Virus record (IMG/VR): IMGVR_UViG_3300021962_000021
Location: 1-64,000 of that record
Reading direction: 5' to 3' (one strand)
Length of the DNA: 64,000 nt
Part shown: positions 44,621 through 61,219 of the stretch, piece after piece
Numbering within the stretch: the first letter of the stretch is position 1
How the letters are laid out: each line of letters starts with the position of its first letter
Translations under genes and position numbers: made by a program
Notes under the pieces: model-generated
Told to the model about the DNA's origin: nothing
The model's input: only the letters and a program-made list of their open reading frames with translations
Databases searched by the model: none

Positions 44621-44648
44621 TTTTATATTTATAAGAAACTATATAATC

Positions 44649-45482
44649 ATGCTACTTAAAAAAGGAGATAACAACGAGAACGTAAAATTAATGCAAGAGA
44701 AGTTAGGAATTTCTCCTGCAGTAACTAACTTTGGTCCAAAAACCGAAGCAGCAGTAAAAGAATTTCAAGCAAAGCACGGATTAACTGCCGATGGTATTGT
44801 TGGTGATAAAACGTGGGCGATGATTATGGGAGAGAATACTCCACCACCGCCACCACCTGCACCGATTGTACCTGTTGGTGGTTTGAAATTGGATGCATTA
44901 AAAGGACATGTTCCTGATGCAGTTATCCAAATGATTCCCGATACAGCGGCCAAATTCCAAATCAACACTCCATTAAGATTAGCACACTTCTTAGCACAAT
45001 GTGGACATGAAAGTGGTGGATTTAGAGTAACACAAGAGAATTTAAACTATTCAGCAAAAGGTTTGAATGGTATATTTAAGAAATATTTCCCAACTGAAGC
45101 TGCAGCAGCATCCTACGCTAGACAACCACAAAAGATTGCAAACAAAGTATATGCAAATCGTATGAGTAATGGTGATGAGGCTAGTGGGGATGGCTTTAAG
45201 TTTCGTGGTAGAGGATATATCCAATTAACAGGTAGAGCAAACTATACTGAATTTGGTAAAGCAATCGGAGAAGATATTGCAAATAACCCTGATATAGTTA
45301 GTGGAAAGCACGCATTATTATCGGCAGCATGGTTCTGGTCTAAAAATGGATTGAACAAAATGGCTGATGGTGGTGCAAGTGATGTAGTAGTAACATCTAT
45401 TACTAAGAGAGTAAATGGTGGAACTATTGGATTAGCAGACCGTATCAAACACTTTAAAGAATACTATCATTTATTAGCATAA
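44649..45482 (+). CDS. endolysin: peptidoglycan-binding domain plus GH19 domain
   Basis: FGPKTEAAVKEFQ..LTADGIVG; LAHFLAQCGHES, FRGRGYIQLTG, VNGGTIGL; probable start 44649. Confidence 0.92.
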   Translation: MLLKKGDNNENVKLMQEKLGISPAVTNFGPKTEAAVKEFQAKHGLTADGIVGDKTWAMIMGENTPPPPPPAPIVPVGGLKLDALKGHVPDAVIQMIPDTAAKFQINTPLRLAHFLAQCGHESGGFRVTQENLNYSAKGLNGIFKKYFPTEAAAASYARQPQKIANKVYANRMSNGDEASGDGFKFRGRGYIQLTGRANYTEFGKAIGEDIANNPDIVSGKHALLSAAWFWSKNGLNKMADGGASDVVVTSITKRVNGGTIGLADRIKHFKEYYHLLA

Positions 45483-45485
45483 AAG

Positions 45486-45511
45486 AAAGGGAGTTAAATA
45501 CTCCCTTTTTT
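45486..45511 (+). terminator. intrinsic terminator (possibly bidirectional)
   Basis: AAAGGGAGT / ACTCCCTTT stem plus T run. Confidence 0.85.
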
Positions 45512-45548: not shown

Positions 45549-45725
45549 ATGGAAAAATTTAAAATATTATTAAACATTTTATTAGTTACTTGTATTGTTG
45601 GATTGGCGATATCATATGTAACACAATTAATAAACTTACCATTTAAACTGAATTTTTTAGAAGCAGTTGGGGTTTATTGTTTGTGGACACCTATACACCA
45701 TACTTTTACTAGAAAAGAAAACTAA
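45549..45725 (+). CDS. small two-TM membrane protein
   Basis: 58 aa hand-read ORF MEKFKILLNILLVTCIVGLAIS...; promoter TTTG 45513, TATATTAG 45537. Confidence 0.55.
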   Translation: MEKFKILLNILLVTCIVGLAISYVTQLINLPFKLNFLEAVGVYCLWTPIHHTFTRKEN

Positions 45726-45780: not shown

Positions 45781-46434
45781 ATGAGACAAAAAGTAACAGC
45801 ACTGGCATTAGGCCTTAAGGAAAGAGCTATATATTTTATACTAGCTCCATTTTTAGCATTCATTGGACTTGCGTTTTTATTCCAAGTCTTTTTTGTAATC
45901 CTTCAATTTAGTGGAAATGAAAATCTTGCAACAGATATTGCAAATGAAATTTCATGGAGAATTGATGGAACATTTAAAAATTCACCAGAAAACATTTGGT
46001 ATAACGCAGATGAACACATTTGGGTTGAAAGTGTAGAAAACAAAGTAAAGATTGGTAAATTGGCGGGAAACCGTAATTTGGAATTTGGTGTTAAGAATGT
46101 ATTAGAAGAATATTTACAGGATAAAAATTATAATTTATCTCCTGATGCTACGCAAAAACTTAAAGTAGAAATTGTATATTTAGATGTCTTAACTACAAAG
46201 ACAAACATTTCAGTATTTCATAAAGGGGAAGAAGAAGTTGTTATCAGAATGAAGGGTATCCTTTATAAAGATGGCAAAAAAGAAAAAGAGGTAATGGTTG
46301 AAGAATCATCATCAGAAATTTCCATGTCTACACTTATTGTTGACCAGGGTGGTAAATTCAATCAAACTTCGTTATCAAACGCACTTAAAAAAGCAGCAGA
46401 TAAACTAATAACAAAACTTTTTGAAAAAAAATAA
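45781..46434 (+). CDS. membrane-anchored envelope protein (CsgG/LptE-like alpha/beta fold candidate)
   Basis: N-terminal TM; C-terminal SNALKKAADKLI helix pattern like 54044. Confidence 0.45.
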   Translation: MRQKVTALALGLKERAIYFILAPFLAFIGLAFLFQVFFVILQFSGNENLATDIANEISWRIDGTFKNSPENIWYNADEHIWVESVENKVKIGKLAGNRNLEFGVKNVLEEYLQDKNYNLSPDATQKLKVEIVYLDVLTTKTNISVFHKGEEEVVIRMKGILYKDGKKEKEVMVEESSSEISMSTLIVDQGGKFNQTSLSNALKKAADKLITKLFEKK

Positions 46435-46435
46435 T

Positions 46436-48103
46436 ATGAAAAAATTATTAAGTATTTTAGGGGTATTATTGATGGTATCCCTTTCGTCTTTTGGACAAAT
46501 CATAGTTAATCAATCAATTTCTACTGGACCTTATAAAGTTGGTGATACCATCACAGTAACTTATAATGTAGATAAAGGAACAACTAAACCACGTTATTTT
46601 TGGTTGAGATATCAATATAATAATAAGGCGTTGACTTACCTTTCTACCACATTTTCACAAGGTAATCAATCTCAAACATATTATACAAGTTGGAATAACT
46701 ATAAGTTTACTGCAGCTGCAAACATATCAGATACTTCATTATATGCACAATATAGTGCAACTCCTTGGGGATATGCAGTAAATGCAGATTGGAATGTTGG
46801 CCAATTGGCAATTCAAAGAGCAGACCAAAGTGTGAATGGTGTAATAGCAACCCAAAAATATATTCTTAAAGACCAAAATGTTTATGAAAATTTTCACAAA
46901 TTAGATTTATCATACGCATTAGATAGTGCAACGGGTAATAACATTCCGTTTGTAAAAACAACATCTGGACCATTATCCATTACAGGGGTTACGGGTAATA
47001 CTTCTTTCTTTAAGGTGAGAGTTTTATTTCCAAATGGATATACAATTACAGACCACAATGTTCAATTAATGAGATTGAAAAATGATGGAACCGGTGATAT
47101 TGATTGGTCACAACAACCGATTGCACAAAGAGCATTGGATGCAAGTGGCGAAGCTCTATTCACTTCGGGTATTAAAGTTGGTGATTCGTTGGGTGTATTT
47201 GTATCACCCGCTTCACAAAAGACTTGGATGAATAATGTAATAACCGTATCGGATGCATATAAATCATTTTTGGGTGTTTCTCAAACTGATTTAAGTGGTG
47301 TTCCTACATTTTTCACTCGTCCAAATTTTGAAAAGAAAATAGGTAATATTACAAAAAATGATATGACATTTACCGAAGCAGATGCATACTATTCATTTGC
47401 ATATGTGATGGGGCAAGACGTATCGGCAAATGCATTTGTTCCAACATCAACAGCAACTTCGTGGAGATGGCATAGTGGTTTGTTAAACCAGAGTTGGTTA
47501 GATGGAACTTCTAAATATAGAGTATATGTAACACAACCTGCACAGACTGTAAATGCTGTATTTGCATGGGGTGGTGATTTAGATTGGTCACATTCATCTC
47601 ATCCTGATACGGTAGCAGCTAGAATAGCAAGTGGTATTTACACAAATGCAGCTAATCCTGGATCATCTGATGTTGCTACTATTAAAACTATGGCAATGAC
47701 TTCATATTCTACTAATGTTTATGAAAATAAAACAGCGGAGACTGCAAAATTATCTATCGTTTCTAAATTAGAGGGTGGTAAGGTTGTATTAACCGGTGCA
47801 TTGACAAAAGAAGGATTGGCGGGTTTACAGGTTGTAATGAATTATGATTCTACGAAATTAGAATTAGAAAATGTAATATTTGATGCGGGTTCAACAATTA
47901 CCAACTTCTCAACAAAAGAAAATGGTAGATTGACATTTGGTTCAATTGACCAATTAAAAACGGCTAGAATCAAAACGGGTATACCATATAAATTAGTATT
48001 TGCACCAAAGGGAGAATTAACAAATACGGCTGGTTTATTCTTCTTTGTATTGGCAGATGCAGTAGATGGTGCCGGTAAAAAAGTTGAATTAACCATAGAA
48101 TAA
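46436..48103 (+). CDS. exported cohesin/dockerin-like protein
   Basis: signal peptide SFG|Q; ITVSDAY/ADAY dockerin-like repeats; C-terminal GLQVVMNYDSTKLEL cohesin-like. Confidence 0.55.
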   Translation: MKKLLSILGVLLMVSLSSFGQIIVNQSISTGPYKVGDTITVTYNVDKGTTKPRYFWLRYQYNNKALTYLSTTFSQGNQSQTYYTSWNNYKFTAAANISDTSLYAQYSATPWGYAVNADWNVGQLAIQRADQSVNGVIATQKYILKDQNVYENFHKLDLSYALDSATGNNIPFVKTTSGPLSITGVTGNTSFFKVRVLFPNGYTITDHNVQLMRLKNDGTGDIDWSQQPIAQRALDASGEALFTSGIKVGDSLGVFVSPASQKTWMNNVITVSDAYKSFLGVSQTDLSGVPTFFTRPNFEKKIGNITKNDMTFTEADAYYSFAYVMGQDVSANAFVPTSTATSWRWHSGLLNQSWLDGTSKYRVYVTQPAQTVNAVFAWGGDLDWSHSSHPDTVAARIASGIYTNAANPGSSDVATIKTMAMTSYSTNVYENKTAETAKLSIVSKLEGGKVVLTGALTKEGLAGLQVVMNYDSTKLELENVIFDAGSTITNFSTKENGRLTFGSIDQLKTARIKTGIPYKLVFAPKGELTNTAGLFFFVLADAVDGAGKKVELTIE

Positions 48104-48104
48104 T

Positions 48105-50396
48105 ATGAAAAGATTATTAGTTACTTTATTACTTTTATTAACATCATTTTTAGGGTTCGGACAGAGTGTATCTGCTCCGGACTCTAAATCATTTTTACCA
48201 TCTACAGCAGGACAGGATGCTAGTGGATTTAGTTTGAGTGGTTTTAGTTCAACAGCAACCCTTTTAGCATCAATCAGTTTAGTAAACCCACCATCGGGTA
48301 CAACCTTTTATCTCAATACAACAGCAGGTTTAACCGCAGCAAGTGGATTCACTTTAGCAGGTAATAAGACTCGTTTAGTGGTAACGGGTACAATGGCTAA
48401 TATCAATACGGCATTAGCATCTCTTAAAGTAAATACTGGTTCGGTAAGAGGTAATGTTGCATTATCCGTAGCAGCAACTGTAAATCCAACCGGATACTAT
48501 TACAATGGTGTAAACGGACATTTTTATAGACCAATATCAACAACTGCAACTTATATAAATGCTAGAACATTAGCATCACAACAAACATTCAAAGGACAAC
48601 AAGGATATTTAGTAACAATAACTTCAGCCGATGAAGATGCTTTCATTTTTAATAATGTACCACAAGGTAATATTTGGTTTGCATTAACAGATGAAGTAAG
48701 TGAAGCAAGATGGACAATTGATGCGGGACCTGAAGCAGGAACTTTAATTAAAATCAATAATGGACAATTAAATGGAAACATACCAGGTCAATACAACAAC
48801 TGGGCACCCGGTGAACCAAACAATAGTGGTAATGAAGATTATGCAGTAACTAAATGGGGTGGTGGTTCTCAATGGAATGATTTACCAAACCATTTTTCAA
48901 ATCCTTATGTAATTGAATTTGGAACTTGGACTAACCCTGATAATGCAACATTTACAGAGTTTTACACCAATTCAGTAACACATACAAACGGAGAAGTTCT
49001 AACCGCAAGATTCAATATTGATTTTGGTAATAATGTAGATGAAACTAAATTTTCAGCAAAAGCAAACACTTTTGTAAATAATGTGTGGGGTGTAACAACA
49101 AACACATCGAGAGTATTAAGTGGGTTGGGTAAAGCAGATTTAACAAATGATTTAGATACGATAAAAGTAAATGGTAATGGTGTTAGAGCAACAACAACGG
49201 GAGGACAAGTAGAATGGTGTGTAGTATATGATTATGAACCATCAAATCAAAGATACCAAATTTTAATAGATAAAAGAGAATTTCCACAAGGCATTTCAGC
49301 AAGTGGTGTTACAACTTTACAATTATTTGATTTGTGGAATGGACCCGTGACGTATCAATGGGATGATGGAACATGGGCTGCTTATTGGATTTATACACCA
49401 ACAGAATTTAATTTTGCAGGTTCATCATTTACATCTAATATAAGACGAGCTGGATTTTTTTGGGGATTAAGTGCAGAATTTACATTTACGCCCATTCAAA
49501 TATACAAACAACATGGAGTAGATTTATCATACATCAACCAAACTGATTTAAATACTTTGTATAATAGTATTGTGACCGTATCAGATGTGTATTTAGCATT
49601 TAAGGAATTGGCTAATGGTGGGATATTTGGAAACGAAACAGGTAATGAATTTGGATATGGTATACAATTTATGAATGCTGATGTAGATGGTAATGGTGTA
49701 TTTAATGAAGCAGATACTTACAAATTATTACAACATTTAACAGGTATACAATCAATAAACGAATATCAAACATTAACATATTTGATGAAGTTATATGGTA
49801 AATCGGAATATGATGGGATTACAAAATCAAATTGGAATACACAATTTAACTCAACGAGGAGTTTATATCCATTCAGTTTAAATACCGGAACACTTAACAA
49901 CACATATAATGTTAGTGTAAGTTGGAAAGGTGATGTAAATCTTTCACATTCGGCAATACCTGTAGTTAATACCACACCTAATTCAATTACAGGTATGAGT
50001 ATTAGAACAATGAGTATTCCTACATCAAATCAAATAAACGCATCAATTATAACCGAAATGGTTGGTGATAGTGTTTATGCATATATCACAATAGACCCAT
50101 TACAACAAGAATTAGTAGGAACACAATTTCAAATAAATTACGATAATACTTTATTGAAATTTGGAAATGTATCCTATAAAACAAAAGGTTCACCAACTAA
50201 CTATGGAACCGATAAATCAACATATGTAAATTTGGGTTCTTTAATTACGGATGGTGGAACTTTGGATAATACTACGGAATATAAAGTATCATTCACAACA
50301 AAATCAAAATTGAATAATGTATTAGGATTAATTTCAATTGGATTTATGGATGCGGTAAATAAAGCAGGAACAACATTAAAAATTAGAATGCAATAA
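48105..50396 (+). CDS. exported C-type lectin / dockerin / cohesin-like protein
   Basis: signal GFG|Q; GHFY..GYLVTITS..NNWAPGEPNNSGNEDY..WNDL (C-type lectin, EPN motif); ADVDGNGVFNEADTY (dockerin/EF-hand); GTQFQINYDNTLL (cohesin-like). Confidence 0.72.
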   Translation: MKRLLVTLLLLLTSFLGFGQSVSAPDSKSFLPSTAGQDASGFSLSGFSSTATLLASISLVNPPSGTTFYLNTTAGLTAASGFTLAGNKTRLVVTGTMANINTALASLKVNTGSVRGNVALSVAATVNPTGYYYNGVNGHFYRPISTTATYINARTLASQQTFKGQQGYLVTITSADEDAFIFNNVPQGNIWFALTDEVSEARWTIDAGPEAGTLIKINNGQLNGNIPGQYNNWAPGEPNNSGNEDYAVTKWGGGSQWNDLPNHFSNPYVIEFGTWTNPDNATFTEFYTNSVTHTNGEVLTARFNIDFGNNVDETKFSAKANTFVNNVWGVTTNTSRVLSGLGKADLTNDLDTIKVNGNGVRATTTGGQVEWCVVYDYEPSNQRYQILIDKREFPQGISASGVTTLQLFDLWNGPVTYQWDDGTWAAYWIYTPTEFNFAGSSFTSNIRRAGFFWGLSAEFTFTPIQIYKQHGVDLSYINQTDLNTLYNSIVTVSDVYLAFKELANGGIFGNETGNEFGYGIQFMNADVDGNGVFNEADTYKLLQHLTGIQSINEYQTLTYLMKLYGKSEYDGITKSNWNTQFNSTRSLYPFSLNTGTLNNTYNVSVSWKGDVNLSHSAIPVVNTTPNSITGMSIRTMSIPTSNQINASIITEMVGDSVYAYITIDPLQQELVGTQFQINYDNTLLKFGNVSYKTKGSPTNYGTDKSTYVNLGSLITDGGTLDNTTEYKVSFTTKSKLNNVLGLISIGFMDAVNKAGTTLKIRMQ

Positions 50397-50740
50397 TGAA
50401 GAAGATATTATTTATATTATTTTTATCGTTGGTAGCTTGTAAAAAGGTAGAAGTTATACCACAACCAGAACCAACACCTATTGATATTTTTTCAGTAAAT
50501 GAAGTAACTCTTACAAACGGACAAGATTTTAATTTTACTTTAAAAAGTGGTGGAGTTCATATAATTACATTATTTGATTCAACCACCCAACAGGTTGTAA
50601 CTAAAGAAAAAATTAACGGAATTGTAGGTAATAACACAAAAAAAATATATACTAAATCATTATCACAAAAAAGTTTATATTTATACATAGTTAATGAGAA
50701 TAACCAAGAAATAGGCAGAACTTTAATTAAAATCCAGTAA
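50396..50740 (+). CDS. lipoprotein
   Basis: lipobox LVAC; small beta-rich domain. Confidence 0.7.
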   Translation: MKKILFILFLSLVACKKVEVIPQPEPTPIDIFSVNEVTLTNGQDFNFTLKSGGVHIITLFDSTTQQVVTKEKINGIVGNNTKKIYTKSLSQKSLYLYIVNENNQEIGRTLIKIQ

Positions 50741-50742
50741 CA

Positions 50743-51108
50743 ATGAAAAAACTTTTATTTGTATTATTTACAATTGTAATGGTTGGTTGTACAAAAACAC
50801 CAATAGCACCATTGCCACCACAAGTTGACAATTCTTTAAAAATTGAAAAAGTTGCAGGTATCAAATTGCAATCACCATTTGTGACTTCAGAAGTTGCAAT
50901 GAATGTGAAAGTAGAAACCTCACAAACTGTTACTGTAAAAATCATTGATATTGCAAACAGAGTAGTATCAAAAGAAGAAATGTATTTAAATTCCGGAGAT
51001 AACATCTTAAAAGTATATACCACCGCTTTACCAGCATCGGCATATAGAATAGGATTATATGATAAAAACGGAAATTTATTAGGAATCACAGATTTTAACA
51101 AACTATAA
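50743..51108 (+). CDS. lipoprotein with T9SS C-terminal-sorting-domain-like Ig fold
   Basis: lipobox MVGC; VKIIDIANRVV..GDN...TALPASAYRI resembles type A CTD. Confidence 0.55.
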   Translation: MKKLLFVLFTIVMVGCTKTPIAPLPPQVDNSLKIEKVAGIKLQSPFVTSEVAMNVKVETSQTVTVKIIDIANRVVSKEEMYLNSGDNILKVYTTALPASAYRIGLYDKNGNLLGITDFNKL

Positions 51109-51120
51109 AAACAAAAATTT

Positions 51121-51426
51121 ATGTCAGAAGAACAAAAAGAATCAGGTGGAACTTCATTGAAAAACATTATTTTGGGATTGGTATCGACTATAACTTTAGG
51201 TGTTGGTGGTTGGTTCACAACTAAATTAACAGGTGGAGATGAAAAAGAAGCAGCTCCAGTTCAACAAGCAGCTCCTGTAATTAACATCCAAAACACCAAT
51301 CAACAATCTCAAGCGGCAGGTGGTGGAAAAACTGTAATCGTTAAAGAAAAAACAGTAGAAAAACCGGCAGCTCCAGTTAAGAAGAAAGAAGGTGATGAGT
51401 TCAAAGAGAAACCGGCAGAATGGTAA
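51121..51426 (+). CDS. single-TM protein
   Basis: IILGLVSTITLGVGGWF TM then Q/K-rich tail. Confidence 0.65.
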   Translation: MSEEQKESGGTSLKNIILGLVSTITLGVGGWFTTKLTGGDEKEAAPVQQAAPVINIQNTNQQSQAAGGGKTVIVKEKTVEKPAAPVKKKEGDEFKEKPAEW

Positions 51427-51518
51427 TATGGTATCAAATAGGGACAGTTCTATTTTTTATAGTAGGACTTTCGTTATTAATTAATTGGTCATTTAAAATA
51501 AAGAAAAAAGATGAGTAA
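51420..51518 (+). CDS. 32 aa single-TM peptide
   Basis: hand-read MVIWYQIGTVLFFIVGLSLLINWSFKIKKKDE, overlapping both neighbours. Confidence 0.45.
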   Translation: MVIWYQIGTVLFFIVGLSLLINWSFKIKKKDE

Positions 51519-52176
51519 TCAACAACCGCCAAGCGGATTTAGGGATTTATTAAACGCAATGATGAAACGTAGATGGTATATTACTGCGTTGGTATTGGGT
51601 GGATTTATGTTTATAATGGCCGGAATGTTCGCCGCTATCGGTATAGGAACAAAAATGGCAGCAGAGTGGAAGGAACTTCTATTATTGTTATTAGGTGCGT
51701 TTATTGGTAGCTATGGTAAAATCATAGATTACTGGTTTAGTGATACCGATAAGGATAAGATGTTAGTTCAGAAAATGGATGAAGAAGATGGTGTTTCGAT
51801 GTCGCATACAAACGATATGAAAGAAACTAATAAACCAGTAACTCCAATCATTCCAGATGCATTTGTAGCAGGAGCAGCTGCAGCAAGAGAATTAGCAGTA
51901 GTAGAAAACAAACAAAATTTTGAATTGGCTAAAATCGAAGCAAGTCAACCAAAACCGGTAGAAACTCCAAAATCACAACCAAGAACAGGTGTTGAAGTTG
52001 ATGAAGATGGTGATGGTGTAATGGATGGTATTGATTTTGATGGTGATGGTAAGATTGATATGTATTTCGCACATAGACAATGTGAACACATTTGGGGTGA
52101 TACTGACCATAATGGTGAAGAAGAATGTCAGAAATGTGGAAAGATAAAAGATGAAGATGCTGAAATGGCAGGATAA
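51511..52176 (+). CDS. two-TM protein with acidic EF-hand-like loops
   Basis: two TMs, DYWFS, DEDGDGVMDGIDFDGDG, C-terminal C..CG. Confidence 0.65.
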   Translation: MSNQQPPSGFRDLLNAMMKRRWYITALVLGGFMFIMAGMFAAIGIGTKMAAEWKELLLLLLGAFIGSYGKIIDYWFSDTDKDKMLVQKMDEEDGVSMSHTNDMKETNKPVTPIIPDAFVAGAAAARELAVVENKQNFELAKIEASQPKPVETPKSQPRTGVEVDEDGDGVMDGIDFDGDGKIDMYFAHRQCEHIWGDTDHNGEEECQKCGKIKDEDAEMAG

Positions 52177-52215
52177 AATGGGTTATTTAATTAATAACAA
52201 TTAAAAACAAAAACT

Positions 52216-52488
52216 ATGGGATTTTGGAAAGAATTATTTAAAGACAACAATGATATCAACGAAAAATCAGTAGTTGGTTTCTTATCATTCGCATGTATGG
52301 TAATTGCATTATTCGTAGACTTGGTAACAGGTTGGATGGGTAAAGAATTATTAATTAACGAATATATTTTTAACGGATTTTTAGTAATCACATTGGGTGC
52401 ATTTGGTATCGCATCGGTTGATAAATACATCAACAGAAAAGCGGAGCATGATAAAAACAAACTGGACGCCGGTGTAGAAGAAGGATAA
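52216..52488 (+). CDS. two-TM membrane protein (holin-like candidate)
   Basis: INEKSVVGF, two hydrophobic helices, charged tail. Confidence 0.6.
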   Translation: MGFWKELFKDNNDINEKSVVGFLSFACMVIALFVDLVTGWMGKELLINEYIFNGFLVITLGAFGIASVDKYINRKAEHDKNKLDAGVEEG

Positions 52489-52504
52489 TAATTTGGTAAT
52501 ATTG

Positions 52505-52533
52505 AAAACCCTCACTTTTAGTGGGGGTTTTTT
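52505..52533 (+). terminator. intrinsic terminator
   Basis: AAAACCCTCACT / AGTGGGGGTTTT stem plus T run; resembles the 40791 terminator. Confidence 0.8.
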
Positions 52534-52543
52534 ATTTATAGGT

Positions 52544-53239
52544 ATGAAAGATTTATTAACAATTGTAATTCCTTGTAAAAATGAAAAAGATAACATATAT
52601 GAGTGTATTTCATTTATTGCAAAACAAGTGGGAAGCACAGGACTTAAAATTATTATTGCAGATAATTCCGATGAAGGTGATAGTTTAGATTTTTTATATT
52701 ATGTTCAGAGAGATTTTAAATATTCTTTAGATATTCAATTTATACAAGGTGGATTTCCAGCAAAAGCAAGATTGGAAGGTAGTAAATTAGTAGAAACACC
52801 TTATATTCTATTCTTAGATGCAGATATAATGTTACAAGATAAATTTGTATTGGGTGAATGTTTAGCATATAATACAGATTTAGTAACTGTCCCATTTCAA
52901 ACCGAAAAAGGATTCAATTGGATATTCCGATTATTTGATATTCAACAAAGAATGAGTAATTGGTTAGGAACTCCATTTGCTATTGGTGGGTTTCAATTGT
53001 GGAAAACCGAATCATATTGGAAAACTGGAGGATATGATGAAACCCATTTATTTGCAGAAGATTATTGGGTTTCACAAAAAACAGAAGTGATGAAAATACA
53101 CAATACAAAAGGTATTTGGACATCGGCTAGAAGATTTAAAAATAAAGGTTTCTTTTATATGTTTTGGTTGAGTATAAAATGTTATTTTAATAGAAATAAT
53201 TCGGAATTTTTTAAACAACATCACAATTATTGGATATGA
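52544..53239 (+). CDS. GT2-family glycosyltransferase
   Basis: IVIPCKNE, FLDADI, GGYDE, AEDY, TSARRF; probable start 52544. Confidence 0.85.
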   Translation: MKDLLTIVIPCKNEKDNIYECISFIAKQVGSTGLKIIIADNSDEGDSLDFLYYVQRDFKYSLDIQFIQGGFPAKARLEGSKLVETPYILFLDADIMLQDKFVLGECLAYNTDLVTVPFQTEKGFNWIFRLFDIQQRMSNWLGTPFAIGGFQLWKTESYWKTGGYDETHLFAEDYWVSQKTEVMKIHNTKGIWTSARRFKNKGFFYMFWLSIKCYFNRNNSEFFKQHHNYWI

Positions 53240-53306
53240 AAAAAAAGATTTATTTTAAAGAAATTTTAATTGGAACAACCATTTTAATGATAATCCTTAT
53301 TAAACT

Positions 53307-54038
53307 ATGCACTCTATAAAATACAAAGCAATTATAGTATCCGACTTACATTTAGGAACAAAAGATAGTAAAGCAGAAGAGTTTATTGAATTTTTAGAAG
53401 AACATCCAACCGAACTATTGGTGTTAAATGGTGATATAATTGATGGTTGGGCAATCAATAGAGGAAGTAAGTGGAAAAAACAACACACAAAAGTAATAGG
53501 TAAATTACTTAAACTTTCAAATAAAACACAAATCATTTGGATAAGAGGAAACCATGACGAATTTATACAAGAATTTATGGGAAACCATTTTGGCGGAATT
53601 GAAATTAGAGAAGATTATATTATCGACTTACCTAATTCTAACAAAAGTTATTATATTTTCCACGGAGATGTTATTGATGTTTTTATAACAAAATATAAAT
53701 GGTTAGCAAAAATAGGTTCAGTAGGATATGATTTTGCACTTTGGTTAAATAGATGGTATAATCGTTATAGAAAATGGAGAAACTTACCATACCAATCAAT
53801 ATCACAAAAAATTAAAAGTGGAGTAAAAGCTGCCACAAATTACATAAACGATTTTGAAACAACTGCTCTATCAATGGCATCTAAAAAAAGATGTGATGGG
53901 GTTATGTGTGGACATATTCATCAACCAGAAGATAGAATGATAAATGGACATCATTATCTTAATTCAGGAGATTGGGTTGAAAATATGACTGCTATTTGTA
54001 TAGATAAAGAGGAAACTCTATATTTATATAAAAAATAG
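53307..54038 (+). CDS. calcineurin-like phosphoesterase, LpxH2/PlcP family
   Basis: SDLHLG, NGDIIDGW, RGNHDE, HGD, CGHIH, NSGDWVE. Confidence 0.85.
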   Translation: MHSIKYKAIIVSDLHLGTKDSKAEEFIEFLEEHPTELLVLNGDIIDGWAINRGSKWKKQHTKVIGKLLKLSNKTQIIWIRGNHDEFIQEFMGNHFGGIEIREDYIIDLPNSNKSYYIFHGDVIDVFITKYKWLAKIGSVGYDFALWLNRWYNRYRKWRNLPYQSISQKIKSGVKAATNYINDFETTALSMASKKRCDGVMCGHIHQPEDRMINGHHYLNSGDWVENMTAICIDKEETLYLYKK

Positions 54039-54043
54039 TATGT

Positions 54044-54763
54044 ATGAAAAAATTATTCGTATTATTCGTTGGCTTTTTGTTAAGCAATGTTGTAGTTGCC
54101 CAAACTGTGGGAAGCACAAAAACTGAACAATATAAAGCATCATTTGAAACCGCAATTGATATTTCTAACTTTTTAGATTATGATGGACCACAAATTCCAA
54201 TCCAAATCTTAAAGTGTGGTATTTCCGATGAGATGTATGAAATGTATCCTGAACTAAAAGAGAAAAGAGTAGGATTGGGTGTAGCAAATATTTCAATGGA
54301 ATATTTGGAAAACCTTAATCGTTTCAAATTTACCGAAGATAAAACTGAAATTAAAAACAGAATGGTGCAACAATTCAAAGCATCAAACGCTGGTATTTCT
54401 GAAAACAAAATTGAAGGTAGAGGTAAAATCAATTTAGCAAAATACTTCGTAACAATCGAATGTTATGATTATTCGGTATCAGAAGATGAGACAGTGAATT
54501 TAAAAGATGGTGTTAAAAACCTAATGGTGACTCGTATCGGTTTACAGGTTAGATTTACCGATGCAGAAACAGGTGTAGTATTCGGAGCAAGTGGTTTGGG
54601 TGAGGCCAAAACTACAAGAGAATTAACTTTATTATCAGATGCAACCATTGATCCTGTTAAGTTTAACCAATCTACTATTTCTATCGCAACAAAGAAAGCA
54701 TTGGATATTGCTTGTGCTAGAATTTTAGATAGAATGATTAAAAAACAAATCTTTACTAAATAA
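54044..54763 (+). CDS. CsgG-like exported protein
   Basis: signal VVA|Q; LENLNRFKFTE, IGLQVRFTDAETG, ATKKALDIA pattern. Confidence 0.6.
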   Translation: MKKLFVLFVGFLLSNVVVAQTVGSTKTEQYKASFETAIDISNFLDYDGPQIPIQILKCGISDEMYEMYPELKEKRVGLGVANISMEYLENLNRFKFTEDKTEIKNRMVQQFKASNAGISENKIEGRGKINLAKYFVTIECYDYSVSEDETVNLKDGVKNLMVTRIGLQVRFTDAETGVVFGASGLGEAKTTRELTLLSDATIDPVKFNQSTISIATKKALDIACARILDRMIKKQIFTK

Positions 54764-54966
54764 TGATAAGATTAAGTAATTTAATTAAAGAAACAAGTGC
54801 AGACCATTCTAACGATAGGGATATGGTGGTAGGAGTTACGGAAATAATTAAAATGGTAAAAGATTTAGACAATAGAAAAGATATAGCAGTTTCAATGATG
54901 GCAAAATTCAGAAATGAAGATGTTATATTTGATAAAGATGAATTTTTAAAAATGTGTCAAATATGA
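54763..54966 (+). CDS. hypothetical protein
   Basis: 67 aa, starts MIRLSNLIKE. Confidence 0.55.
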   Translation: MIRLSNLIKETSADHSNDRDMVVGVTEIIKMVKDLDNRKDIAVSMMAKFRNEDVIFDKDEFLKMCQI

Positions 54967-55247
54967 AAAACTTACTATTAGCAGCAATATTGTTATTAGG
55001 AATAGCAAGTTGCACTCCGGTTAAATATGTAATGATTGACCCTAAAGATTCTACAAAATTGGTAGAGGTTAGAAAGAGAATTGTATATGATGATTATTAT
55101 ATGCAATCTCCATTGTTTTATAATTATTGGATAACACCACATTATAGAACACCTATTATTATACAACAACCAATTAGAGTTCCTCAACCACCGGTTAGAT
55201 ATAAACAATCAGCACCTATAAGAAAATTTGAACCACGTAAAAGATAA
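54963..55247 (+). CDS. lipoprotein
   Basis: lipobox IASC. Confidence 0.65.
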   Translation: MKNLLLAAILLLGIASCTPVKYVMIDPKDSTKLVEVRKRIVYDDYYMQSPLFYNYWITPHYRTPIIIQQPIRVPQPPVRYKQSAPIRKFEPRKR

Positions 55248-56662
55248 TGAAAAAGTGGTTAATAGGTCTTATTGTTGTTTTATTATTTGCTTTAAAAGCC
55301 AATGGACAAACCTATACCCAAACTTATGTTGATAAGTGTACCGGAGAAATTAAGATAGTTACAACATCCTATGTAAATGGTAATGCAATAGTTTCTTTTT
55401 ATAATCAAGTAAAGATATTCACACCATCGGAAGTTGCAACCGGTGTAGTTCAGGGGTGGTTAAACTCAGTTTATGCACAATATAATTCGATGGCATGCCC
55501 AACGAATCAGGTAGTAACACAGACTGTTCAAAATACAGTTACACAAGCTGCTTCACAAGCCGCATCTTCTGCAGCAAGTGCAGCTGCAAGTTCAGCGGCA
55601 TCTTCATCGGCAAGTTCGGCAGCAAGTAGTTCAGCATCATCTGCGGCATCATCATCTGCAAGTTCGGCAGGTAGTTCTGCAGCAAGTAGTGGGGCATCGG
55701 CTTCTTCATCAACACCGCCGGCAAGTAGTAGTTCATCTAGTAGCTCATCTTCATCTAGCTCAAGCAGTTCATCTTCTTCATCATCTTCGGAAAGTAAAAC
55801 TGAAACAAAGAGTGAGGGTAGTTCTTCATCATCCGAGTCAAAGAGTGAGAGTAAATCGGAAAGCAAATCGGAAGAATCAAAATCCGAAAGTAAGAGTGAA
55901 GAAAAGAAAGAAGAATCTAAATCCGAATCCAAAGAAGAAAAGAAAGAGGAAAAAAAGGAAGAGAAGAAAGAATCCAAAAAAGAAGAAAAGAAAAAATCAG
56001 GTGGATTAAACCCAATGATATTGGCATCAGATTTAACAGCGGCACAAAATCCTGATAAAAAAATGAATGCAATTTTGGGATTGGGTTGGAGTAGAGCAAG
56101 TATGGCCGGTGATGAATCATTCTCTGCAAATGCAATGATATGGAGTAATTTAAAACAATTTGCATTAGGTGGTGGTTATACTAAAATGGAATTTGATGAA
56201 GGACAATTAAAAGCAATCCATTCATATGGAACTACTGTCGCATATTTGGATGGTAACTATATGAATTTAATGAGTTACACTTATATTAAACCACATCCAA
56301 AACACGGAACATATGGTTATAATTTGGGTGTTGTGAATTTATTTATTAAAAATCCAGAAAAAGATAGATGGGAATATAATATGATTTCATCGGGTGTAGC
56401 ATTTTGGACTAAACCATACGCATATAGTAAAAAATTGACAATATCACCACAAACATTTATTTTACTATCACCAATTAGTTATAATTCTACAACAGGAAAC
56501 ACATTGGTAAATAGACATATGGGATTTTTAGTAGGAAGTTCATTTGACTATAAAATCAGTAAAAGATTTGGATTCAGCATAAACTATAAGATAGCAGGAA
56601 ACACTATGCCTGGATCTCCTATATTACATAATGTATTAATTGGAAGCAGATTAATATTATAA
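55247..56662 (+). CDS. exported protein with Ser/Ala and Glu/Lys low-complexity linker and C-terminal beta-barrel-like domain
   Basis: signal ANG|Q; alternating hydrophobic strands in the last ~220 aa. Confidence 0.65.
   Translation: MKKWLIGLIVVLLFALKANGQTYTQTYVDKCTGEIKIVTTSYVNGNAIVSFYNQVKIFTPSEVATGVVQGWLNSVYAQYNSMACPTNQVVTQTVQNTVTQAASQAASSAASAAASSAASSSASSAASSSASSAASSSASSAGSSAASSGASASSSTPPASSSSSSSSSSSSSSSSSSSSSSESKTETKSEGSSSSSESKSESKSESKSEESKSESKSEEKKEESKSESKEEKKEEKKEEKKESKKEEKKKSGGLNPMILASDLTAAQNPDKKMNAILGLGWSRASMAGDESFSANAMIWSNLKQFALGGGYTKMEFDEGQLKAIHSYGTTVAYLDGNYMNLMSYTYIKPHPKHGTYGYNLGVVNLFIKNPEKDRWEYNMISSGVAFWTKPYAYSKKLTISPQTFILLSPISYNSTTGNTLVNRHMGFLVGSSFDYKISKRFGFSINYKIAGNTMPGSPILHNVLIGSRLIL
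55546..55997 (+). repeat. low-complexity coding repeat (SSAA / poly-Ser / SESK / EEKK)
   Basis: visible in translation, synonymous codons varied. Confidence 0.9.
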
Positions 56663-56686: not shown

Positions 56687-57289
56687 ATGAAAAAATTATT
56701 TACGTTATTTACACTTTTAGTTATTGGTGTTATAACATTCGCACAAGATACCGTTAGAGTTAAAAACAATGTATTCGAAGTTCTTTATTCACAATCATTG
56801 GAACAACCATTGATGATTAAATATCATTCAACAAATAGACCTACAAAGGTTAATAGAGGTGCTATGGATTTTTACAAAGAACCAAATATCAAAACATCCG
56901 ATGCTGATGATTACAAAGCAAACATATATGATAAAGGACATGGTGCACCCGCTGCAACATTCTCTGATAATATCGAAAATCTTAAACAAACATTTTCGTA
57001 TTTGAATTGTATTCTACAAGACCAATATCTTAATAGAGGTGAGTGGAGATTGTTAGAGGAACAAGAAAGAAAGTGGGATGATACTGAAAATTTAACAGTA
57101 GTAATTAAAGTTTTATTTGATAAGCCTGTTAAAAGAATACCAACAAATGCTGCAATACCAATTGTTTTACAAAAGCATATTTATTTTGAAAACCAAAAGA
57201 AATGGAAGTGTTATGTATTTTTAAATGAAAGACCTAAATATAAGTGGGAAGAATTAGAAATGATTTGCCCACCATCTGACCATAAATAA
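56687..57289 (+). CDS. exported DNA/RNA non-specific endonuclease (NucA family)
   Basis: signal TFA|Q; YDKGHGAPAA, LNRGEW..LE. Confidence 0.88.
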   Translation: MKKLFTLFTLLVIGVITFAQDTVRVKNNVFEVLYSQSLEQPLMIKYHSTNRPTKVNRGAMDFYKEPNIKTSDADDYKANIYDKGHGAPAATFSDNIENLKQTFSYLNCILQDQYLNRGEWRLLEEQERKWDDTENLTVVIKVLFDKPVKRIPTNAAIPIVLQKHIYFENQKKWKCYVFLNERPKYKWEELEMICPPSDHK

Positions 57290-57305: not shown

Positions 57306-57719
57306 GTGTTTAAACCAAATCATTTACACTTATTAGTGAAGGGATATATGAGCACCCCACCAAAAGAAGAAGCTCATTTGAATGAATTTTTTAAGAAATT
57401 AGTAGAGAAAGTAAGAATGGTAGTAGTTGCCGGACCAACATCCGTTTATGTTAATGAACCGGGTAATGAAGGAATAACAGGAACGGTGACATTAGCAACA
57501 TCGCATGCTAGTATTCACGTTTGGGATGCGGAAAGACCTGCAATGTTCCAATTTGATTTATATAGTTGTTCGGAATTTACAGCAGAAGAAGTATTAGAAG
57601 AATTAGATAATTGGTTTGGATTAGAATCAGCAAATTGGATAATGTTAGATAGAAATGGTGATGATTTTGATTCTATTGTATCCGGAAAATGGGAAGGGGC
57701 TGGGGTAACCACGTCGTAA
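57306..57719 (+). CDS. pyruvoyl-dependent S-adenosylmethionine decarboxylase-like proenzyme
   Basis: HLLV, GITGTVTLATSHASIHVW, FDLYSC; GTG start. Confidence 0.75.
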   Translation: MFKPNHLHLLVKGYMSTPPKEEAHLNEFFKKLVEKVRMVVVAGPTSVYVNEPGNEGITGTVTLATSHASIHVWDAERPAMFQFDLYSCSEFTAEEVLEELDNWFGLESANWIMLDRNGDDFDSIVSGKWEGAGVTTS

Positions 57720-58752: not shown

Positions 58753-59122
58753 GGGGATGTTTGGTATTGATTGCCATGCGAATGATAATATCACAAGTAG
58801 AGAAATGATACTATCTCTTAATATCGTATCGAAACAATAAATGACGAAAAGTCAACAATGACTTACGATGACCTTATGGCATTCGTAGGTATGGATTACG
58901 CTGTAGCAGCCTAATCCTACTCGGGTCGGAATACATATAACCTAGGAACAGAAGTATCTATAAAGGTGGAAAATTGACTGAACCCAAAATCGAGTCAAAA
59001 CATTGATTATGATAAAATGTAAAAACTCATATATTTGTCAGTTGTGAATAACTGAATAAACTTGTGAGACGTTGGTATTATGATTACTCGGTAAGACACG
59101 GGTTCGACTCCCGTCATCTCCA
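58753..59122 (+). ncRNA. ssrA: tmRNA
   Basis: GGGGATG/CATCTCC acceptor stem with G3-U, T-arm GGTTCGACTCC, tag ORF 58843-58914 ending YAVAA-stop. Confidence 0.95.
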
Positions 59123-59212
59123 CAAAAACGCTAATATGTAAAGTATTGATTGTCAATAAGGCGTTGATTATCAATGAGTTATAACTTATTGATTTTCAAT
59201 GACTTAAGAAAG

Positions 59213-60562: not shown

Positions 60563-60571
60563 ATTTTATAA

Positions 60572-61214: not shown

Positions 61215-61219
61215 GTTTT

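Follow-up and report, generated by a model that had tools for sequence, protein, structure and literature searches.

A block of about 11 kb in a large phage genome raises the question of why a virus would encode so many proteins bearing export signals or membrane anchors. The block lies at 45.8-56.7 kb of the first 64,000 nucleotides (here referred to as the window) of the 238-kb genome in IMG/VR record IMGVR_UViG_3300021962_000021, which belongs to a T4-like jumbo phage that infects Bacteroidota, probably Flavobacteriales. An earlier note, made from the sequence alone, had listed four SPI-type exported proteins, three lipoproteins and several membrane proteins in this block, including a CsgG-like protein, a second protein with a similar terminal helix, a C-type lectin protein and a beta-barrel-like protein, and had read them as a virus-encoded secretion and surface-display system. 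We therefore asked whether the export signals and folds are real, whether the genes belong together, and what they might do.

Exported and membrane proteins cluster in the block

To define the block, we annotated each gene by profile searches, inspection of its N terminus, and detection of its orthologs in 43 fully flanked metagenomic loci (described below; counts in the list refer to these loci). All genes are on the + strand.

45483-45511 (+): terminator-like hairpin (12-bp stem plus T run) right after the endolysin gene (44538-45482; PG_binding_1 and GH19), marking the upstream edge of the first transcription unit
45549-45725 (+): 58-aa small hydrophobic protein, not part of the conserved core, 3 of 43 loci
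45781-46434 (+): core gene, 217-aa protein with an N-terminal membrane anchor and a predicted periplasmic domain of the CsgG/LpoB kind, 43 of 43 loci
46436-48103 (+): core gene, 555-aa secreted modular protein with a beta-rich N-terminal part, a dockerin-like segment and a C-terminal cohesin, 43 of 43 loci
48105-50396 (+): core gene, 763-aa secreted protein with an N-domain (residues 20-135), C-type lectin (136-280), hypervariable beta domain (about 356-477), dockerin-like EF-hand segment (478-560) and C-terminal cohesin (641-763)
50396-50740 (+): core gene, 114-aa lipoprotein, predicted small beta-sandwich, 43 of 43 loci
50743-51108 (+): core gene, 121-aa lipoprotein with a DUF3244/T9SS-sorting-domain-like beta-sandwich, 43 of 43 loci
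51121-51426 (+): core gene, 101-aa bitopic membrane protein with a Pro/Ala/Lys-rich tail ending in a conserved Trp, 42 of 43 loci
51511-52176 (+): core gene, 221-aa membrane protein with two hydrophobic segments, 42 of 43 loci
52216-52488 (+): last gene of the first unit, 90-aa protein with two transmembrane segments, short and divergent and less often detected, 23 of 43 loci
52504-52532 (+): strong terminator-like hairpin (13-bp stem plus T run) that ends the first transcription unit
52544-53239 (+): passenger gene, family-2 glycosyltransferase, 3 of 43 loci
53307-54038 (+): passenger gene, LpxH-like metallophosphoesterase, 3 of 43 loci
54044-54763 (+): core gene and the most conserved, 239-aa exported protein of the CsgG/HfaB/LpoB superfamily without a lipid anchor in this phage, 43 of 43 loci at 67-94% identity
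54763-54966 (+): passenger gene, 67-aa protein, 3 of 43 loci
54963-55247 (+): passenger gene, 94-aa Pro-rich basic lipoprotein, 4 of 43 loci
55247-56662 (+): core gene, 471-aa outer-membrane protein with a signal peptide, a domain of about 70 aa with two conserved Cys, a Ser/Glu/Lys-rich disordered linker of about 150 aa and a predicted C-terminal beta-barrel (about 255-471), 40 of 43 loci
56687-57289 (+): associated gene just downstream of the block, secreted non-specific DNA/RNA endonuclease, within reach in 11 of 43 loci

Four proteins carry SPI-type signal peptides followed by Gln at +1, in keeping with the Bacteroidota Q-rule (PMC5837995): 46436-48103 (SSFGQ), 48105-50396 (GFGQ), 54044-54763 (VVAQ) and 55247-56662 (ANGQ). 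The endonuclease at 56687-57289 (TFAQ) is a fifth. Lipoboxes were read in 50396-50740 (LVAC), 50743-51108 (MVGC) and 54963-55247 (IASC), and 45781-46434, 51121-51426, 51511-52176 and 52216-52488 encode membrane proteins. The glycosyltransferase, the metallophosphoesterase and the 67-aa protein are the exceptions within the block, as none has an export signal. To test whether this clustering could arise by chance, we ran a crude signal-peptide scan over 302 ORFs of the genome, which placed about 9 of roughly 11 candidates at 46.4-57.3 kb, under 5% of the genome, so the clustering is not chance; the scan missed 50743-51108, whose lipobox was read directly. The signal peptides were thus judged by eye and by a crude script, and the calls rest on sequence features and on the invariance of the cleavage-site Gln in three alignments (A2, A3 and A4, the last being that of the 471-aa protein). 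The observation of the earlier note is confirmed.

Among the passengers, the glycosyltransferase matched Pfam Glycos_transf_2 (46.7 bits) with only generic NCBIfam hits. The terminator-like hairpin at 52504-52532 overlaps the TTG-called N terminus of this ORF, whose real start is therefore probably the ATG at 52544. The metallophosphoesterase matched Pfam Metallophos (51.2 bits), and its best NCBIfam hit was UDP-2,3-diacylglucosamine diphosphatase at 57.8 bits, full length but below the 134-bit cut-off. The endonuclease matched Pfam Endonuclease_NS (71.3 bits).

Predicted folds of the core proteins

We next assessed the folds that had been proposed, and each was supported. For the 239-aa protein, Atlas searches gave feature scores of 0.93-0.94 and TM of 0.56-0.66 to CsgG clusters. 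An AF2 model (pLDDT 74.7, pTM 0.71) matched CsgG in Foldseek (E 1.6e-7), and VIA comparison gave Z of 11.0-11.4 to CsgG, 10.4 to PelC, 10.3 to Cj1090c and about 8 to LptE. The wider family of this protein, a lipoprotein family, has 290 clusters, and 8 of 18 sampled members hit Pfam CsgG (best 1.9e-17). The 217-aa protein had a weak Pfam Lipoprotein_16 hit, its C-terminal 100 aa resemble the 239-aa protein (E 4e-4), and hhalign to a bacterial 208-aa CsgG-like operon partner gave a probability of 66% and E 5e-5 over 117 columns, consistent with a second CsgG-like protein.

In the 763-aa protein, Pfam Lectin_C was hit at 23.7 bits, and alignment to mannose-binding protein covered EPNN, ED and WND, a motif that is invariant in 25 orthologs. 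Foldseek with its AF2 model returned cohesins (E about 2e-6, TMt 0.65-0.68), indicating a true cohesin fold, and the CD23 lectin (TMt 0.72). Among the 25 orthologs, Lectin_C was detected in 24, Cohesin in 16 and Dockerin_1 in 10. The central beta domain is swapped among relatives, suggesting a variable binding target. The 555-aa protein matched Pfam Cohesin at 27.7 bits, above the 24.1 cut-off, is paralogous to the lectin protein over the last 190 aa (E 3e-12), and was hit by the dockerin-region profile (E 3e-4). Its nearest Atlas clusters are all viral, several with Cohesin, Dockerin_1 and Por_Secre_tail. The dockerin assignment is nevertheless weak, resting on sub-threshold Pfam hits, one canonical Ca loop and low AF2 confidence.

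For the 471-aa protein, an Atlas structure search gave TM of 0.68-0.74 to autotransporter, DUF6662, DUF3570 and Omp85 barrels and 0.78-0.86 to viral clusters. The two small core lipoproteins are paralogs (E 1e-8). The 121-aa lipoprotein matched Pfam DUF3244 (21.3 bits), and the gene identified by coordinates as its ortholog in a 245-kb relative gave a sub-threshold Por_Secre_tail hit of 14.9 bits. A conservation profile over 50 orthologs of the 221-aa membrane protein showed a nearly invariant juxtamembrane stretch (51-95); the protein also has an Asp-rich Ca-loop-like run and a His/Cys cluster at the C terminus.

Co-conservation of the core genes

We next asked whether these genes are inherited as a unit. 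Nine core genes were present in 40-43 of the 43 fully flanked loci and the tenth (52216-52488) in 23, against 3-11 of 43 for passengers, and the spacing between the lectin and CsgG-like genes varied from 1.7 to 6.2 kb. The core thus stays together while the genes between and around it change, and the 11-kb block mixes a conserved core with variable passengers. Relatives carry an extra 295-aa outer-membrane barrel inside the module. All 79 IMG/VR loci belong to one clade, so part of the synteny is inheritance. However, compact versions occur in two further lineages, the cultured Flavobacterium phage immuto (gp012-gp019) and a metagenomic locus (L087), with different gene orders and only 25-55% identity. 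The recurring set comprises the 101-aa membrane protein, the CsgG-like protein, the barrel with its low-complexity linker, the lectin, a small LpoB-like protein, the cohesin protein and the nuclease. The 101-aa protein is 41% identical to immuto gp016 and 48% to the L087 homolog, in both cases next to the CsgG-like gene; the N-domain of the barrel protein is 34% identical to immuto gp018, which has the same architecture; and the endonuclease is 48% identical to immuto gp012, which lies directly upstream of that phage's lectin gene.

Interpretation of the module

The earlier note's interpretation is partly supported. Of the three outcomes named in advance as able to overturn it, neither different folds nor a lack of co-conservation was found, and nothing points to virion components, although this last point is indirect: the T4-type Gp23 capsid gene is at 197.7 kb, about 140 kb away, and cohesin and dockerin profiles hit no other protein in the genome. 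The secretion-system part of that interpretation is not shown, and grazer evasion, aggregation and superinfection exclusion remain hypotheses.

We interpret the block as a conserved accessory module whose products are aimed at the host cell envelope, not the virion, most likely forming an envelope complex that carries a glycan-binding scaffold; we hold this view with moderate confidence. What the analysis establishes is the gene content and its conservation: about ten core genes encode Sec-exported or membrane proteins, comprising two CsgG/LpoB-superfamily proteins (one membrane-anchored and one periplasmic, the latter a lipoprotein in other lineages), an outer-membrane barrel protein, two paralogous small lipoproteins, three small inner-membrane proteins, and two paralogous secreted proteins ending in a cohesin fold, one with an EPN-type Ca-dependent lectin domain; this core recurs in two other phage lineages, and bacterial homologs of the CsgG-like protein sit beside outer-membrane barrel genes. 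The mechanism, in contrast, is inferred, as are expression, localization and glycan binding. In this view, the proteins would be exported during infection through host Sec and signal peptidases I and II, the barrel and CsgG-like proteins would form an outer-membrane-associated complex, the cohesin and dockerin-like modules would link the two large proteins into a scaffold held at the envelope, and the lectin would bind mannose/glucose-type glycans of the envelope or cell surface. A search of RNA runs with a 10-kb query listed none, while six metatranscriptome runs shared 6-23% of the sampled words of the 720-bp CsgG-like gene. We found no published description of such a module.

As to purpose, our tentative proposal, which rests on analogy only, is that the scaffold coats or masks envelope glycans of the infected cell, excluding other phages and sparing progeny from wasteful adsorption. 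Gluing the cell to glycan-rich particles or to other cells ranks next and is less likely still.

Alternative explanations

We next considered whether the complex might never reach the surface, acting instead in the periplasm and at the inner face of the outer membrane, either to stabilize or remodel the envelope and peptidoglycan during a long jumbo-phage infection or in lysis timing and envelope disruption, with holin, antiholin or spanin-like roles for the small membrane proteins and lipoproteins. In support of this, no T9SS sorting domain was found in this genome, leaving passage of the lectin across the outer membrane unexplained, and the lipoproteins lack an acidic surface-export motif after the Cys. 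An endolysin lies directly upstream here and inside the module in another locus (L071), the fold relatives LpoB, PelC and LptE act at the periplasmic face, and the 221-aa membrane protein has the size and layout of T4-type holins. However, the endolysin is within reach in only 7 of 43 loci and is cut off from the module here by the terminator-like hairpin. By our reading of the sequences, the lipoproteins look like folded beta-sandwiches and the 101-aa protein has a disordered tail rather than a coiled coil, unlike known spanins. A lectin with a swapped specificity domain is hard to explain for a housekeeping envelope role. In addition, immuto gp015 carries Cohesin and Por_Secre_tail domains, above the cut-off, and many viral relatives in Atlas and BFVD carry T9SS sorting domains, which implies an extracellular location for that part and directly suggests a surface role for the cohesin module in the cultured relative. 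We consider this alternative doubtful.

A stricter form of the earlier note's idea, that the 239-aa protein is a true CsgG-type oligomeric outer-membrane pore secreting the lectin and cohesin proteins, or another phage substrate, to the cell surface, is somewhat less likely again. CsgG chains, including the membrane-bound form, are the top structural matches, family members hit Pfam CsgG, the model has unusually long beta strands at 134-173, and the large secreted proteins lack any other recognizable outer-membrane export signal. In contrast, the protein of this phage has no lipobox and no evident transmembrane hairpins: the long predicted hairpin has a charged tip (..SVSEDETVNLKDGVKN..), and the stretch where a second hairpin would lie is short and polar. 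PelC and Cj1090c score almost as well as CsgG in the structural comparison. Searches for CsgE, CsgF or curlin found none encoded. CsgG passes unfolded chains through a constriction of about 1 nm, which fits multidomain proteins of 555-763 aa poorly, and in immuto the cohesin protein uses the host T9SS instead.

It is very unlikely that the block is a loose collection of unrelated host-derived genes held together only by shared descent. Passenger genes do come and go, all 79 IMG/VR loci are one clade, and no member has a known function, but the set recurs in immuto and L087 in a different order, the core is retained while insertions accumulate between its genes, and the CsgG-like and barrel pairing is also seen in bacteria. 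Least likely of all is that the large proteins are virion parts, such as tail fibres or decoration proteins, with unused signal peptides: although the lectin protein has a mosaic, swapped central domain like receptor-binding proteins and weak BFVD matches include receptor-binding and tail-fibre-like proteins at low probability, the cleavage-site Gln is invariant and the signal peptides canonical across orthologs, neighbouring genes encode lipoproteins and an outer-membrane barrel, there are no PHROG structural hits, homologs carry T9SS sorting domains, and the module lies far from the Gp23 gene, among replication and metabolic genes.

Comparison with known systems

The fold of the 239-aa protein is almost as close to PelC and LptE-type proteins as to CsgG. 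In bacteria, two operons run barrel protein, 208-aa CsgG-like protein, then the lipoprotein homolog, and a third has a CsgG-like gene near DUF3187, an outer-membrane barrel family, although homology between the phage barrel and the bacterial operon barrels was not detectable. The inferred complex of the barrel and CsgG-like proteins would be comparable in layout to PelB/PelC or LptD/LptE.

Genomic setting

The 64 kb lie at the start of a single 238,219-bp virus record rated 100% complete. Nearly all genes are on the + strand, and GC is about 31%. To place the phage, we compared its marker genes with those of known phages. Its family-B DNA polymerase matches thousands of T4-type phages, with the best isolate match being Microcystis phage Mel-JY01 at 49%, and a Gp23-type major capsid gene is present at 197.7-199.1 kb (253.6 bits), indicating that the phage is T4-like. 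The moraphages (PMC12619734) were also considered; this phage has T4-type polymerase and capsid genes. The envelope-protein genes sit among replication, nucleotide and sugar-metabolism genes, about 140 kb from the capsid gene. Other features of the window are as follows.

about 19400-34300 (+), a long run of ORFs whose translations look, on visual impression only, like glycosyltransferases and sugar-nucleotide enzymes, which together with the envelope module would suggest heavy investment in glycans
57306-57719, an S-adenosylmethionine decarboxylase-like gene (Pfam AdoMet_dc, 47.4 bits), directly after the secreted nuclease gene of the module region
58753-59125 and 59322-63727 (+), a phage-encoded tmRNA (77.5 bits; tag peptide ending ..YAVAA) followed by tRNA genes, 15 by ARAGORN, all confirmed by Rfam
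60152-60564 (+), a full-length GOLLD RNA (Rfam RF02032, 278.6 bits, model positions 1-416), between the tmRNA and the tRNA array

Export signals cluster in one region

We first asked whether the region is as rich in exported and membrane-bound proteins as the earlier note had claimed. Translation of the ORFs, with signals judged from sequence features, gave the following products.

46436-48103, 555-aa protein with a predicted signal peptide followed by Gln
48105-50396, 763-aa lectin protein with a predicted signal peptide followed by Gln
54044-54763, CsgG-like protein with a predicted signal peptide followed by Gln
55247-56662, barrel protein with a predicted signal peptide followed by Gln
56687-57289, nuclease with a predicted signal peptide followed by Gln, directly after the 11-kb span described in the note
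50396-50740, 50743-51108 and 54963-55247, three proteins with lipoboxes
45781-46434, 51121-51426, 51511-52176 and 52216-52488, four membrane proteins

Gln at +1 is the Bacteroidota Q-rule (PMC5837995) and has already been noted for phage proteins of Porphyromonas (PMC10367356); in the ortholog alignments, this Gln is invariant or nearly so. A crude script applied to 302 genome ORFs placed about 9 of roughly 11 signal-peptide candidates in 46.4-57.3 kb. The clustering is therefore real, and the observation made in the note holds. Three genes in the span have no export signal: a GT2 glycosyltransferase, an LpxH-like phosphoesterase and a 67-aa protein. The ORF finder starts the GT2 gene at a TTG (52493), so that a strong terminator-like hairpin (52504-52532) overlaps the N-terminus called in this way, and the ATG at 52544 is the more likely start. 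The metallophosphoesterase (53307-54038) aligns end to end with LpxH (UDP-2,3-diacylglucosamine diphosphatase) at 57.8 bits, below the equivalog cut-off, and could be a lipid-A-pathway-like enzyme in a phage. In the membrane protein encoded at 51511-52176, residues 51-95 form a nearly invariant juxtamembrane stretch and residues 185-215 a conserved His/Cys cluster, with an Asp-rich Ca-loop-like run between them.

General searches added little. PHROGs gave no meaningful hit for any module protein, NCBIfam gave nothing useful, megablast of the region against GenBank phages found nothing, and neither did tblastn of the barrel protein against phages.

Predicted folds of the module proteins

We next examined the folds proposed in the note. 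The CsgG-like protein (54044-54763) has no Pfam hit itself, and profiles of its family (alignments A1 and A8) found no PDB sequence, so the link to CsgG rests on fold and on Pfam hits of family members. A protein-language-model search and the structure of a close homolog point to CsgG/HfaB/LpoB clusters. An AlphaFold2 model built on 25 orthologs has a pLDDT of 74.7 and a pTM of 0.71, and its top Foldseek matches in the PDB are CsgG (4uv2, 4uv3 and 6l7c; E 1.6e-7 to 1e-5). A second aligner, VIA, gave Z 11.0-11.4 over 160-173 residues, with PelC (10.4), Cj1090c (10.3) and LptE (about 8) following. A profile search of 1.84 billion representatives found 290 clusters in the wider family; of 18 sampled members, 8 hit Pfam CsgG (PF03783; best 1.9e-17) and 6 hit LpoB. 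Most of the 17 sampled relatives have a lipobox, including most of the bacterial members and another phage lineage (P0131), whereas the window protein has an SPI site (VVAQ-T) with no Cys. The protein is therefore a divergent member of the CsgG/LpoB superfamily that has lost the lipid anchor in this phage.

These data do not show it to be a pore. The model has long strands at 134-153, 156-173 and 179-195, but the tip of the long predicted hairpin is charged, and the 196-208 stretch is short and polar, leaving little room for a second hairpin. We also searched the genome for curli partners. No CsgE and no Curlin_rpt were found, and the only CsgF match was a sub-threshold 13.8 bits at 114 kb, unrelated to the module. 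A curli system was therefore rejected.

The second CsgG-like protein (45781-46434) shares its C-terminal region with the first (E 4e-4), has a weak Lipoprotein_16 hit, and aligns with a bacterial CsgG-like operon partner (hhalign probability 66%, E 5e-5). Alignment of the two phage CsgG-like families with each other by hhalign was weak, at 36%.

In the lectin protein (48105-50396), Pfam Lectin_C scores just above its cut-off, and alignment to mannose-binding protein covers the EPNN..ED..WND calcium/sugar site. E237, P238, N239, E244, W257, N258 and D259 are invariant in 25 orthologs, and a WIGL-type motif (..IWFALTD..) is present. Foldseek matched the CD23 lectin domain at TMt 0.69-0.73 (probability 1.0), although model confidence in the loops is low. 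The canonical disulfide cysteines are absent, with no Cys in residues 136-280. The C-terminal domain of the same protein, modelled with good confidence, matches solved cohesins (E 1.7e-6, TMt 0.65-0.68, rmsd 3.3 A), and 16 of 25 orthologs hit Pfam Cohesin (PF00963). The 555-aa neighbor scores 27.7 bits against a Cohesin cut-off of 24.1, and the two proteins are paralogous over their last 190 residues. The dockerin call is weaker: there is one canonical EF-hand-like loop plus helix (524-545) and a degenerate first repeat, Pfam Dockerin_1 gives 13.4 bits against a cut-off of 22.9, 10 of 25 orthologs hit weakly, and the AlphaFold2 pLDDT is below 50 at 479-566.

In the barrel protein (55247-56662), an Atlas structure search of residues 255-471 gave TM 0.74 to an autotransporter barrel, 0.68-0.70 to DUF6662, DUF3570 and Omp85, and 0.78-0.86 to viral clusters. 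Ahead of the predicted barrel lie a small domain with two conserved Cys and a Ser/Glu/Lys-rich linker of about 150 residues. This layout of N-domain, linker and barrel is compatible with an autotransporter-like passenger domain carried through the barrel to the surface.

The core genes are conserved together

To determine whether these genes form a module, we fetched 79 IMG/VR loci, with 52-92% identity in the best tblastn segment of the lectin protein, and searched them with every window protein from 42 to 59 kb. The lectin protein alone has more than 3,000 metagenomic homologs, all unnamed. Counts were taken from the 43 loci with full flanks (see the table below). The spacing between the lectin and CsgG-like genes ranges from 1.7 to 6.2 kb, and the barrel changes position in some loci. 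Many relatives carry, after the lectin gene, an additional secreted protein of about 295 aa that ends ..MIGTNFQF, as a typical outer-membrane barrel does, and that this window lacks (related loci L010:13539-14423, L032:13160-14044, L054:13148-14044, L055:13253-14140 and L016:13473-14363).

Table. Presence of window genes in the 43 fully flanked related loci.
Eight core genes: 42-43 loci
Barrel: 40 loci
Short 90-aa membrane protein: 23 loci
Endolysin, 58-aa protein, GT2, phosphoesterase, 67-aa protein, third lipoprotein, nuclease and AdoMet decarboxylase: 3-11 loci each (endolysin within reach in 7, phosphoesterase in 3)

Because these loci are one clade, we looked further afield. The cultured Flavobacterium phage vB_FspM_immuto (160 kb; host Flavobacterium sp. 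LMO8, Baltic Sea) has a compact version at 9.9-16.4 kb. Its genes are, in order, a secreted nuclease (48% identical), a lectin with EPN/WND, a 363-aa secreted protein, a cohesin protein, a homolog of the 101-aa membrane protein (41%), the CsgG-like protein (53%), a 474-aa protein with the same N-domain, linker and barrel layout, and a small protein resembling the second CsgG-like protein. In a third lineage, locus L087, the order is membrane protein, CsgG-like lipoprotein, barrel protein, lectin and small LpoB-like protein. Bacterial homologs of the CsgG-like protein were found in two uncharacterized operons (L082:7948-12546 and L084:8096-11608) that run barrel protein with an N-terminal extension, 208-aa CsgG-like protein, then the CsgG-like lipoprotein homologous to 54044-54763. 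A caspase-like Peptidase_C14 protein follows, with a PEGA domain, in L082 and is fused to the lipoprotein in L084. In a third context, the homolog lies near a DUF3187 gene, DUF3187 being a barrel family. An hhalign comparison of the phage barrel family with the bacterial operon barrels was not significant. Recurrence of the same set at low identity and in different orders is good evidence for a functional unit.

In the window, terminator-like hairpins at 45483-45511 and 52504-52532 frame a first unit, from the anchored CsgG-like protein to the 90-aa membrane protein, while the CsgG-like and barrel genes lie in a second stretch. A search near the module for T4-type late promoter motifs (TATAAATA) and Bacteroidota-type -7 motifs gave nothing usable for timing, and sigma-70-like sites were fewer than in shuffles. 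No RNA run was listed for a 10-kb query; with the 720-bp CsgG-like gene, six metatranscriptome runs shared 6-23% of its words, a match in words and not in mapped reads. K-mers of this gene were also found in freshwater, riverine, estuarine and marine-labelled metagenomes.

We also asked whether the genes could be a phage lysis cassette, and rejected this reading. The endolysin is not stably linked, being within reach in 7 of 43 loci and separated here by a terminator-like hairpin. By our reading of the sequences, the lipoproteins look like folded beta-sandwiches and the 101-aa membrane protein has a disordered tail, rather than resembling a small Pro-rich o-spanin and a coiled-coil i-spanin. 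Docking to the virion through cohesin or dockerin modules on structural proteins was likewise considered and rejected.

Predicted destination of the proteins

Export across the inner membrane is well supported, but beyond that the evidence is split. In immuto, the cohesin protein (gp015) ends in a T9SS sorting domain above Pfam's cut-off (34.6 and 37.8 bits). The nearest viral clusters and the best BFVD match of the window's large proteins also carry such domains, often with cohesin and dockerin hits, so that in the wider family at least the cohesin component is predicted to be sent to the cell surface. In contrast, no sorting domain (Por_Secre_tail or TIGR04183/04131) was detected in the module proteins or anywhere in this genome at E <= 1, and T9SS cargo was rejected for this genome. 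Only the small lipoproteins have a faint resemblance to one, through a DUF3244 hit and a 14.9-bit Por_Secre_tail hit in what is, by coordinates, the ortholog of 50743-51108. The lectin scaffold of this phage may thus lie either outside the cell or under the outer membrane.

A domain of the lectin protein is exchanged among orthologs

We next compared the domains of the lectin protein across orthologs. Mean pairwise identity is 0.75 for the N-domain (20-135), 0.77 for the lectin (136-280) and 0.43 for the middle domain (356-477), a confidently modelled beta domain. The relatedness of the middle domain correlates poorly with that of the rest of the protein (r = 0.31). The window and related locus L022 are 83% identical outside this domain and 33% identical inside it, whereas the window and related locus L059 are 59% identical outside and 75% identical inside. 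Such domain swapping is typical of proteins that bind a variable partner, which could be a strain-specific host surface structure or a competitor's protein.

Interpretation

We read the block as a phage accessory module that builds an outer-membrane-associated complex in the infected Bacteroidota cell. In this view, the barrel and the CsgG-like proteins would pair as PelB/PelC or LptD/LptE do, and the complex would carry a cohesin-linked, glycan-binding scaffold. The analysis itself establishes the clustered export signals, the fold assignments at the strengths given for each protein, and the recurrence of the gene set; expression, pairing, Ca-dependent sugar binding, cohesin-dockerin binding and purpose are inferred from sequence and predicted structure. 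Our preferred purpose, held tentatively, is masking of envelope glycans, with exclusion of other phages and protection of progeny from adsorption to infected cells or debris. The co-travelling secreted nuclease would fit by destroying DNA that reaches the periplasm or the surroundings. Attachment to glycan-rich particles or to other cells is the next option, and both purposes are inferences. The note's interpretation, a virus-encoded secretion and surface-display system, is only partly supported, since neither a secretion pore nor surface exposure in this phage has been shown.

Among the alternatives, a periplasm-confined or lysis-related complex is unlikely but survives best, and a true CsgG-type secretion pore is somewhat less likely still. 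An unrelated gene collection is very unlikely, and virion parts are the least likely of all.

A bolder possibility, which we consider doubtful, is that Bacteroidota phages encode a self-contained, cellulosome-like surface apparatus, in which a phage-made outer-membrane complex (barrel plus CsgG-like ring) and the host T9SS together put a cohesin/dockerin scaffold with an exchangeable specificity domain and a mannose-type lectin on the infected cell. The phage would thereby reprogram what the cell sticks to or which other phages can reach it. This would be a new class of virus-encoded envelope machinery, widespread in freshwater and brackish waters.

Phages are known to add single lipoproteins or outer-membrane proteins to their hosts. 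A co-conserved set of about ten genes with a lectin, cohesin/dockerin connectors, CsgG-like proteins and barrels would be the most elaborate phage-encoded envelope remodelling kit yet seen. The module could bear on superinfection exclusion, particle attachment and aggregation of Flavobacteria, which recycle algal carbon. It would give cohesin-dockerin modules and the CsgG fold a new biological setting, and it points to an uncharacterized bacterial pairing of a barrel with CsgG-like proteins. Since a cultured phage-host pair carries a compact version, the question can be addressed directly.

Full-text searches found no description of phage-encoded cohesin/dockerin, lectin and CsgG-like sets. 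GenBank already labels immuto's lectin and cohesin genes by domain, so the parts are partly annotated, but we found no report of the module. Phage genes that remodel the host envelope are already known, and this module differs from them in its set of parts; there is a fair chance that it is something categorically new.

Comparison with known systems

The curli secretion channel CsgG of E. coli, the wider CsgG/HfaB/LpoB clan and the fold relatives PelC and LptE share an alpha/beta fold with the phage protein over 160-173 residues (Z about 11), and members of the phage protein's family hit Pfam CsgG and LpoB. In bacteria, the family is an outer-membrane lipoprotein encoded next to a barrel protein, like PelC beside PelB and LptE beside LptD. 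The window protein differs in having no lipid anchor, no evident amphipathic transmembrane hairpins and no Pfam hit of its own, in the absence of encoded CsgA, CsgE or CsgF, and in being encoded by a lytic phage.

Cohesin-dockerin assemblies include cellulosome scaffoldins and non-cellulosomal cohesins such as those of Clostridium perfringens glycoside hydrolases. As in these, the C-terminal domains have a predicted cohesin fold (Foldseek E about 2e-6, TMt 0.65-0.68), a conserved EF-hand-like loop is followed by a helix (..NADVDGNGxFNEADTYKLLQHL..) as in a dockerin repeat, and several proteins of one locus carry both kinds of module, as in scaffold systems. However, there are no enzymes and no carbohydrate-active catalytic domains, the putative dockerin has only one canonical Ca loop and scores below Pfam's cut-off, and the setting is a Gram-negative envelope of Bacteroidota and a phage genome.

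With animal-type C-type lectin domains (mannose-binding protein, CD23, langerin), the phage protein shares the EPN...E...WND Ca/sugar site and a WIGL-like motif, invariant in 25 orthologs, and a fold match with a TMt of about 0.72. It lacks the canonical disulfide cysteines, and the domain is embedded in a 763-aa bacterial-style secreted protein. In comparison with T9SS cargo proteins of Bacteroidota, the homologous cohesin protein of immuto and many viral relatives end in a Por_Secre_tail sorting domain, and the small lipoproteins here have a weakly sorting-domain-like beta-sandwich, but no protein of this genome reaches even E = 1 against Por_Secre_tail, so this phage's proteins are not recognizable T9SS cargo.

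Phage-encoded envelope proteins that alter the infected or lysogenic cell include T5 Llp, lambda Lom and Bor, and Cor, alongside plasmid TraT and the outer-membrane barrels recently catalogued in huge phages (bioRxiv 10.64898/2026.10.24.761521). That preprint, of October 2026, catalogues barrels, PspA and sortases and reports 1,603 barrel proteins in huge phages, 678 of them from freshwater, often next to envelope genes, but its text mentions none of lectin, cohesin or CsgG. Like the module proteins, as we read them, these are phage-made lipoproteins and outer-membrane proteins that are exported by host pathways and are not part of the virion. Those, however, are single genes or simple pairs, whereas this is a co-conserved set of about ten genes with lectin, cohesin and CsgG-like parts.
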